Notes under the pieces: model-generated | The model's input: only the letters and a program-made list of their open reading frames with translations | What the model was told of the DNA's origin: nothing | Databases searched by the model: none | Position numbers and translations under genes: made by a program | In this document: positions 42,741-56,929 of the stretch, one piece after another | Layout of the letters: every line of letters begins with the position of its first letter | How positions within the stretch are numbered: position 1 is the stretch's first letter | Assembly: GCF_000315625.1 (NCBI RefSeq) | Contig: NW_005434611.1 | Coordinates: 259,698 to 323,697 of the forward strand | Origin: Guillardia theta CCMP2712 | Taxonomy: Eukaryota; Protista; Cryptophyta | Length of the DNA stretch: 64,000 bases | Reading direction: 5' to 3'

Positions 42741-42975
42741 AGTGGGTGAGAATTTCGAGGATGGACAAGAAGATGTCGAGCATGGAACTTGAGAGATCAA
42801 CTTGGTTGTTGTCGAATCAGCAACGAAAGAGGGAAGGTTGGTGTTTTAAGATTTGTTATTACGAGAGATTCAATGTTGATTCTTGTCCTCCACGTAATCA
42901 AGATTCTTGTATCTCTGTGTATCCCTCCACCCAGATTCTGGTATTCTCCTCCTCCTCCTCATAACATTTTTTTTG

Positions 42976-43009
<34 letters not shown>

Positions 43010-43593
43010 GAAGATTCTCGGAACCTCCTTCTCCTCCTCCTCCTCCTCCTTTTATTCTCCCCTTCATCCACATGATCGTCACTCTGTCACGATCATGACG
43101 TACATACCCTCTACGTCTCATCGGCGCAGTTACACATAAGAACAGAACTTTATCTCCTGCACGCAAGCTGTAGAAACTGAGCAAACTACCTGTGTCGGGG
43201 AGGGCAAAGAGGTATGGGTCAAGGTTATTGAAAGTATAATTCAGCTACAATAAAAAATCAGGAAGGTCTTGGGGGTGGAGGAATAAAGGCGGGAGCCTTC
43301 TTCAGGAGTAAAAGGGTACCCAACAAGGAGTAAGCCAATCTAACGCGAGCGATAACGAGGAGAGAGGAGGGAGCGAGAGAAAGGAGGGAGAGAAAGGAGG
43401 GGGAGAGGAAAGAAGGTAGAGGATAGAGGACGTAGAACAGAGGACATTGAGTAGCAGTGCAGAGGCAGGGCATACCAGTCGGGATCAGAGAGCTGCGGGA
43501 ACTCAAGGGAGAGGGTGAGGGGTGAAGGGGGGGGAGGAAGAGTGAAAAGGAGGGCCAGAGGAAGGTTCCAGACGCAACATACAAGTCTCAACC

Positions 43594-44802
43594 ATGGGCG
43601 AGTTTGAGCTCGAAGATCCAGAGAGCGTGGAGGGAACAAACTGGCTTAACATAGCATGGAATCTCCCCAAGGGAAGAGATCTGCGAGAAAAGATCACAAC
43701 GCTGCGACGAGAGATTCATGAAAGAGAAAAATCTCTGCAATCATGCCGGGAGATGCTAGACCAGGCGCGTGCAGACATCATCTTCAACAGGGAGGAGTAC
43801 AAGGCTGCAACAAACAACATCGCTCTGCTGCAAACTGAGACCAAGGGGATGGAGAAGGTCTTGCGAGGTAAGAGTCTGTTCCCTGAGCTTCCGGTCGGCT
43901 CACGTTGGGCGCGCAGAGAGCGAGAGGCTCGTCGCTGAGATCAGGCCCATCATACAGCAGCTCGGCAAATCAGATTTGGATAAACTCCGTCGAATGCCAG
44001 ACCCAGGTGCGGCCTCCCTCCTCTCTCGCTCCTCGTCCTCAACGACTTGCTTGCAGCCCCGACGATCAGGCGGACAGTGGAGCTGCTGCACCTGATCGTG
44101 AACGCGGAGAGCGTGGACCACAGGCGGCAGATCGACTGGGAGAGGCAGTGCAAGAAGACGCTGTCCAAGAGCGACCTCATCTCCTTCATCATGGACTTCG
44201 ACCCTGCTCCCTTGATGGCGAAGCCTCAGCTCCTGGCCCACATCGACCTGCACTACCTCGGGGGGAAGGCGTGCGAGGGGCTCCCTGAAGCTCCTGACGT
44301 CAGCCCGCAGCGAAACTCGGGGGGGCTGGAGAAACGAACTCCCCCTCCTCCTCTGATCCGGCGGTCCTCCTCCACCCCAGTGCAGCCGCTGCGGAGGTTG
44401 GAGAAGAGGTCGTCGATGAGCGTGCTGGAGGAGCCGAGCAAGTGCCTGACGGAGGAGATGGTGTGTCACTCCAGTCAGACTCTCGTCTCCATCTTCAGGT
44501 GGTGCGTGTGTCAGGTCAGGCTCAGCGTGATCCGACGGTCCATGGATCCCGTGCTCAACGCGTCTCAGTGCTTGCAGAACAAGCTGCAGAACGAGATGGA
44601 GAGGCAGAAGAGAGCGAGGGGGAATGAACTTCTCGCCGTTGAGAACGAGAGGGTCTTTGAGCAAGGTTGCAAGCAGAAAGAAGCTGACCTTGCGGAGCTG
44701 ATGAAGAAGATGGAGGAGCTCACAAAACAGGTGCACCAGCTAGTCAAGAAGGCTGCGGACTTTAAGGAAGATGAAGATCGCGAACGAGCGCGTCAAGCAT
44801 GA
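43594..44802 (+). CDS. Stand-alone dynein stalk / microtubule-binding-domain-like protein, 369 aa (exons 43594-43867, 43917-44006, 44057-44802)
   Basis: Coiled coil, then IRPIIQQLGKSDLDKLRRMPDPAPTIRRTVELLHLIV...IDWERQCKKTLSKSDLISFIMDFDP...LLAHIDLHYL...LTEEMVCHSSQTLVSIFRWCVCQVRLSVIRRSMDPVL, then a second coiled coil. This follows the dynein MTBD helix pattern. Two GT-AG introns (49 and 50 nt) keep the frame. Confidence 0.75.
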
Positions 44803-44849
44803 TACAAGTTTCCTTTATGTTCCCATCATGTTTTCTTGAGCATGTGAAG

Positions 44850-56929
<12,080 letters not shown>

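Follow-up and report, generated by a model that had tools for sequence, protein, structure and literature searches.

The window analysed here is a stretch of 64,000 nucleotides from the genome of the cryptophyte alga Guillardia theta CCMP2712 (positions 259,698-323,697 of contig C63), to which all coordinates refer. On its plus strand lies a gene of three exons (43594-43867, 43917-44006 and 44057-44802, the last ending in the stop codon at 44800-44802), which are separated by two short introns with GT..AG borders, one of 49 nt (43868-43916) and one of 50 nt (44007-44056). Exon 1 encodes residues 1-91 together with the first base of codon 92, the full codons of exon 2 specify residues 93-121, and the codons split at the two junctions encode E and A; the coding sequence of 1110 nt yields 369 amino acids and a stop. 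The gene is present in the Guillardia genome as a single copy. Both splice joints, 43867>43917 and 44006>44057, are found in contigs from the Guillardia locus that were assembled from three RNA runs in three studies, and because these assembled contigs carry the exact joints, with both introns removed, they derive from spliced RNA. The exon borders as first read from the DNA, which implied a three-exon gene for a protein of 369 residues, are matched exactly by the contigs. Independent support for the splice model is provided by an environmental relative of the protein, P0004, which reads continuously through both of the Guillardia exon junctions.

The transcript spans only the interval from about 43323 to about 44950. 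Its 5' untranslated region (43323-43593, plus strand) is a purine-rich leader that contains no ATG and has an in-frame TGA at 43543, the starts of the RNA contigs lying at 43323, 43345 and 43350; its 3' untranslated region (44803-44950, plus strand, the end being approximate) meets or extends into the 3' end of a convergent gene on the minus strand. The interval 42938-43322 is covered by none of the assembled RNA contigs, which indicates that the gene is separate from the gene upstream. In a run from 2026 the raw RNA reads accumulate over 44546-45081, and raw-read coverage declines after about 44947-45081. The first-pass annotation had placed the gene between other genes and had treated it as independent of any larger transcription unit; the uncovered gap upstream and the convergent gene downstream bear out the first statement, and the spliced contigs of the three studies, which contain no AAA+ exons, bear out the second by representing a separate transcript. 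The gene is complete and free-standing, with a start and a stop of its own.

Beyond about 44921, the contigs of this gene also carry CT..AC joints, which are the introns of the convergent minus-strand gene (44921-45702), a gene whose exons are tiny (about 48-120 nt) and whose introns measure 45-131 nt; since the 3' ends of the two genes meet or overlap, the assemblers have fused both transcripts in three runs. On the other side, TCA and CTC trinucleotide microsatellites lie between the upstream gene and the present one (42936-43062 and 43350-43560), and a long purine-rich GA/GGA tract occupies the 5' untranslated and promoter region.

Comparison with a strain contig that is about 97% identical (L001) reveals 17 synonymous and 3 non-synonymous changes among 307 codons, while the divergence amounts to 10% in intron 2 and 2.4% in the coding sequence of exon 3. 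This excess of synonymous changes, together with an intron that has diverged further than the coding sequence, identifies a working gene under purifying selection and not a relic. L001, a Logan contig, was rejected as a cDNA; it retains the introns and is genomic.

Architecture of the encoded protein

The protein consists of two heptad-patterned arms on either side of a globular region, all of its parts being encoded on the plus strand. An acidic N-terminus (residues 1-27) contains the motif NIAWNLP at residues 19-25 (43648-43668), which is common to the Guillardia protein and P0004, and is followed by the first arm, CC1 (residues ~28-101, exons 1 and 2). Exon 2 then supplies an IRP proline (Pro102, 43946-43948) and the helix H1 (residues ~107-118, ~43961-43996), and exon 3 supplies the remaining parts: helices H2-H5 (residues 123-198, 44057-44286, exon-3 residues 1-76), which end in a YLGG motif; a disordered insert in the H5-H6 loop (residues 199-247, 44287-44433, exon-3 residues 77-125) with a predicted pLDDT below 50; a short helix and H6 (residues ~252-285, 44446-44547, exon-3 residues 130-163; pLDDT 87-93) with a conserved Trp in the sequence FRW; an MDP proline (Pro286, 44548-44550, exon-3 residue 164); and the second arm, CC2 (residues 287-369, 83 residues, 44551-44802 including the stop). 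Pfam detected no AAA or DHC domain on any exon.

The coiled coils of about 70 residues that had been proposed on both sides of the head are upheld by their periodicity. The power at a period of 3.5 residues exceeded that of all 500 shuffled sequences for exon 1 residues 26-91, and that of 498 of the 500 for the 83 residues following MDP, and the two arms match in length, at about 70-80 amino acids each. They are predicted to pair as an antiparallel hairpin, as they do in the model of a dinoflagellate relative, P0014, and residue counts would give this hairpin a length of about 10-11 nm.

The first-pass annotation had compared the centre of the protein with the head of the dynein heavy-chain stalk, the MTBD, by means of a list of motifs, and every motif listed is present, column for column with the MTBDs of Guillardia's own dyneins. 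The two prolines cited as marking the junctions of the head with the arms fared differently. Exon-3 residue 161 aligns with residue 132 of a dynein reference (L002), and by counting on, Pro164 corresponds to Pro135, so that the MDP proline occupies exactly the CC2-Pro column of dynein. The IRP proline does not occupy the CC1-Pro column: it is displaced from it by one heptad, lying 7 residues towards the MTBD, and it is lacking in P0004 and in the dinoflagellate relatives.

Two basophilic serine motifs, RRSSS (44359-44373) and KRSSMS (44404-44421), lie in the loop insert. A motif of the RR[ST] type recurs in this otherwise variable loop in the Guillardia, Hanusia and dinoflagellate members of the family (alignment A6), which suggests a putative phosphorylation site.

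Homology to the dynein MTBD

Protein searches, alignments and folding were all run exon by exon, and the principal comparison set, A2, consisted of the MTBDs cut from 19 of Guillardia's own dyneins. A phmmer search of the PDB with exon 3 returned only coiled-coil noise. The Pfam model of the dynein stalk (PF12777, MT; gathering cut-off 24 bits), by which the proposed identity was to be checked with HMMER, gave no match on any exon at E values up to 10, none at this locus in a six-frame search of the genome, and none on the relatives or the neighbouring open reading frame, and to this extent the expectation of a Pfam match was disappointed. The same six-frame search did find the dynein stalks of the genome, with 34 matches, of which 31 exceeded the cut-off and 30 were kept as loci.

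In hhalign comparisons with A2, exon 2 alone matched at the H1 columns (9-32) with E 5.8e-4, while a shallow alignment of exon 3 matched weakly, with E 0.029, at the columns of H3-H4, which means that intermediate relatives are needed to make the connection. Two profiles were built from members of the family only, with all dynein rows excluded: A6, with exon 3 as its first row, and A5, which includes CC1 and H1. A6 matched A2 with a probability of 96.3 and E 1.8e-9 over 101 columns, from H2 to H6 across the loop insert, with H2-H5 at dynein columns 30-94 and the short helix and H6 at columns 95-130; A5 did so with a probability of 97.3 and E 2.7e-11. Controls in which A2 was reversed, or had its columns shuffled 20 times, gave probabilities of at most 0.6 and E values of at least 0.1. 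The proposal of a stalk head was thus sustained by profile-profile comparison, at an E value (1.8e-9 for A6 against the 19 dynein MTBDs) well separated from the shuffled controls.

The signal is also almost confined to dyneins when the whole PDB is the background. When A5 was compared with 177,635 PDB sequences, 21 of the 22 matches were dynein heavy chains, the best being the MTBD of yeast cytoplasmic dynein (E 1.2e-9). The yeast dynein MTBD was likewise ranked first by a profile restricted to cryptophytes (A7; E 7.7e-4), and residues 1-200 of P0004 alone matched the Dictyostelium dynein MTBD (E 0.0014). A separate marginal match at C112:149505-149693 (L035; E 0.009) contains two internal stops, involves the low-complexity loop part of the family profile, and is probably due to chance.

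The predicted fold leads to the same identification. AlphaFold2 was applied to exon 3 with a family alignment of 14 rows that contained no dynein and with no templates. The model has a mean pLDDT of 80, with values above 90 outside exon-3 residues 77-125, values of 86-93 for H2-H5, and values of 90-97 for exon-3 residues 140-246, which form a single continuous helix. Foldseek matches of this model to the PDB were weak (E 0.45-4), and seven of the top ten were dynein MTBD or stalk entries. Direct superposition with VIA-align gave Z 11.7 and an rmsd of 2.1 Å over 122 residues with 3ERR, Z 11.1 with 5AYH, and Z 9.7 with the DNAH7 MTBD; superposition on the mouse dynein MTBD, from dynein residue 3313 on, gave Z 11.2-11.7 and an rmsd of 2.1-2.3 Å.

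When 48,161 representative chains were searched exhaustively and independently of Foldseek, the six best were all dynein MTBDs or stalks (Z 11.2-8.3), each match extending over the globular part, while the background of long single helices reached a Z of at most 7.7. A feature search of the ESM Atlas with exon 3 gave no usable match. The model of residues 20-345 of the dinoflagellate relative P0014 (pLDDT 87, pTM 0.69) is a long hairpin with a helical head at its tip; it matches the entire mouse stalk 5AYH with a Foldseek E of 5.5e-7 and a TM score of 0.70, and its top 50 Foldseek matches are all dynein stalks.

The centre of the Guillardia protein is genuinely homologous to the dynein MTBD. 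Independent lines of evidence, from sequence, profiles, fold and transcripts, support a free-standing protein in which an MTBD homologue lies between two coiled coils and which has no AAA+ ring.

Relatives and origin

No protein search returned the full-length spliced Guillardia protein, and a word-index search with exon 3 identified only two close relatives: P0001, a strain variant with 98% identity, and P0002, a fragment from the cryptophyte Hanusia phi, which at 71% identity is the best foreign relative. A search of 1.84 billion representative proteins added P0004 (E 6e-9), P0005 (a short fragment) and P0006 (E 9e-4), and a profile search of metagenome contigs for loci of the family found no confirmed relative. 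P0004, the closest full relative, is encoded on an environmental JGI contig (sample 3300042316, L032:38-1746) and has the layout NIAWNLP, CC1, H1-H5, a long insert, an unspliced intron and the H6 block. The unspliced intron of this contig sits inside H6. The insert is rich in Ser, Ala, Gly and Pro and comprises about 290 residues, compared with about 50 at the same site in Guillardia, which makes the H5-H6 loop an insertion hot spot in this family.

P0006 led to P0008-P0014, dinoflagellate proteins of 521-611 amino acids from Symbiodinium microadriaticum, Effrenium voratum and transcriptome contigs. In P0006 and in P0008-P0014 the stalk module continues into a C-terminal region with a match to Pfam OmpA (PF00691), and these sequences bear the database names "omp16, partial" in S. 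microadriaticum and "OmpA-like domain-containing protein" in E. voratum. An hhalign comparison of the exon 3 alignment (A1) with the dinoflagellate family (A3) gave a probability of 96.8 and E 3e-10, with 40% identity over 68 columns covering H2-H5. Blocks in H2-H5 and H6 are shared across the family (RRT, DW-RQC/RC, FD, YLG and W), with the loop insert following YLG. The dinoflagellate proteins thus resemble the Guillardia protein in having a homologous stalk and MTBD and a loop insert at the same place with RR[ST], but differ from it in their OmpA-like C-terminus, in 8 extra residues between H2 and H3, and in that most of them lack the CC2 proline. These proteins constitute a small, previously unnamed family, which comprises cryptophyte members and dinoflagellate members fused to OmpA-like domains. 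The joining of a microtubule-binding-type head to a peptidoglycan-binding-type domain in dinoflagellates is odd, and no description of it was found.

Other candidates were noticed in the ESM Atlas. One cluster of 324-residue proteins has 83 members, mainly from haptophytes, 25% of which carry PF12777, and two mollusc clusters, of 214 and 751 amino acids, resemble the stalk-MTBD model in shape; an EF-hand domain is present in 16% of the members of the 751-residue cluster. The haptophyte and mollusc clusters may be further motorless stalk proteins, or they may be dynein fragments.

A maximum-likelihood tree of MTBD cores places the stalk family in one group (95/90), which joins the pair formed by cytoplasmic dynein-1 (L024) and dynein-2 (L023) with support 95/94 on long branches; the identity of the two dyneins was checked against the PDB, and the PDB ranking of the family profile also favours cytoplasmic dynein-1. 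An MTBD closest to those of the cytoplasmic dyneins is therefore supported, with the qualification that the branches are long and that long-branch attraction is possible. The domesticated origin suggested for the gene is supported by this placement beside the dynein-1 and dynein-2 MTBDs.

Proposed mode of action and known systems

In dynein, helices H2, H3, H4 and H6 form the binding-primed face towards the microtubule, and whether binding is strong or weak depends on the position of H1 and CC1, which is set via the stalk; in SRS-MTBD constructs the register that is chosen fixes the affinity for microtubules (PMC6629372). In an alignment of the family with dyneins made with MAFFT, from which the loop insert was cut out, the family retains the K/R pair of H1, the Trp of H3 followed by K/R-K/R, and the Trp of H6 (RW), and the net charge of its MTBD core falls inside the dynein range. 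These conserved basic and aromatic columns in H1, H3 and H6 point to a putative microtubule-binding activity of the Guillardia protein. If the two arms zip together as predicted, the MTBD at the tip of the hairpin would dock on the tubulin dimer as it does in dynein, through the basic positions retained in H1 and H3 together with the region of the H6 Trp, which would make the protein a passive microtubule-associated protein with no motor activity, set on a rigid spacer. Since it contains no ATPase that could shift CC1 relative to CC2, the register built into the arms would determine its affinity; a partner at the base of the stalk, where the conserved NIAWNLP and the C-terminus lie, might tune this affinity, as might phosphorylation at the conserved RRSS-type motifs of the disordered loop. 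Because there is no ATPase able to move CC1, a passive microtubule binder is the most likely reading, and we regard a free-standing dynein stalk head that acts as a passive, register-set binder as probable, though by no means assured. As regards its putative role in the cell, a tether, a cross-linker or a dynein competitor is plausible, with a registry that would be either fixed or controlled by a partner, and the competitor would be a special case of the passive binder.

The principal alternative is that the MTBD fold has been kept but repurposed, in such a way that the tip binds some other partner and the protein serves as a coiled-coil adaptor unrelated to the cytoskeleton. Such a change of function would accord with a sequence too diverged for the Pfam MT model, with the large insert in the H5-H6 loop, and with dinoflagellate relatives that are joined to OmpA-like domains and present no cytoskeletal context. 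It would not, however, lead one to expect that conservation between family and dynein should be highest in columns of H1, H3 and H6, which are part of the reported interface (with H2 and H4; PMC6629372), or that the net charge of the core should stay within the dynein range, and we consider this alternative unlikely, while taking it seriously. A second alternative accepts microtubule binding and supposes that the protein serves mainly to compete with dynein or to regulate it by occupying its footprint, and not to tether. The closeness of the MTBD to those of cytoplasmic dyneins would suit a competitor, as would the lack of any cargo-type domain in a protein whose only other conserved element is a short N-terminal motif, but the second domain of the dinoflagellate relatives suggests a linking role, and competition as the main function appears improbable. 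Finally, the gene could be a decaying fragment of a dynein heavy chain, a set of stray exons, or a generic coiled coil with a chance motif match, a view to which the lack of a Pfam match and the weak direct pairwise signal lend some colour, but these pseudogene, gene-fragment and chance readings are rejected as far as the analyses used here reach, with hardly any probability left to them, in view of a transcript that is complete, spliced and furnished with a start and a stop of its own, synonymous changes that outnumber non-synonymous ones by 17 to 3, conservation in another genus, profile matches that across a whole database are almost exclusively dyneins, structural top matches that are all dyneins, and the failure of the shuffled controls.

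If the passive, register-set binder is the correct reading, a natural motorless stalk would represent a new class of microtubule-associated protein, a natural experiment in which register sets affinity in the absence of an ATPase, and a compact module in which microtubule binding could be studied. The OmpA-like fusions of dinoflagellates hint at the use of a portable microtubule anchor, and the failure of the Pfam MT model to recognize diverged MTBDs implies that more proteins of this kind may be hidden among those annotated as hypothetical. In its broadest form the proposal is that the dynein stalk and MTBD have here given rise to a natural family without a motor, the first of its kind: a passive tether of about 10 nm whose affinity is set by register and perhaps switched by phosphorylation of the conserved loop motif. 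The module would have been exapted in at least two architectures, as a protein of its own in cryptophytes and as a fusion with OmpA-like anchors in dinoflagellates, and in view of the haptophyte and mollusc clusters it may be more widespread; we judge the arguments for and against this composite claim to be evenly balanced. No description of the dynein MTBD other than as a part of dynein heavy chains is known to us, and full-text literature searches for a dynein MTBD outside these chains found no description of one.

Among known systems the closest is the dynein stalk itself, with its MTBD (3ERR, 5AYH, 6RZB and 6KIO), with which the Guillardia protein shares the six-helix fold (Z 11.2-11.7, rmsd 2.1-2.9 Å), the order CC1, H1 to H6, CC2, the CC2-Pro column, the basic residues of H1, the Trp and basic pair of H3, and the Trp of H6. 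Unlike a dynein heavy chain, it has no AAA+ ring, linker or tail, and it comprises 369 amino acids where the heavy chain comprises more than 4000; its CC1 proline is shifted by one heptad, PF12777 is blind to it, and the short H5-H6 loop of dynein is replaced by a disordered, Ser-rich insert of about 50 residues. The arms of the dynein stalk are about 100 residues long, compared with about 70-80 in the Guillardia protein. The SRS-MTBD chimeras, in which a dynein MTBD is carried by the coiled coil of seryl-tRNA synthetase (3ERR and 3J1T), are similar in presenting a motorless MTBD on a coiled coil, which is antiparallel in the chimeras and predicted to be so in Guillardia; they are, however, laboratory constructs with a foreign base, whereas the Guillardia protein is the product of a natural gene and has arms of its own, with a conserved motif at their base. 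Non-motor microtubule-associated proteins of the NDC80 type also place a globular head on a coiled coil, but there the heads are CH domains and the coiled coils are parallel, and they have no homology to the Guillardia protein.
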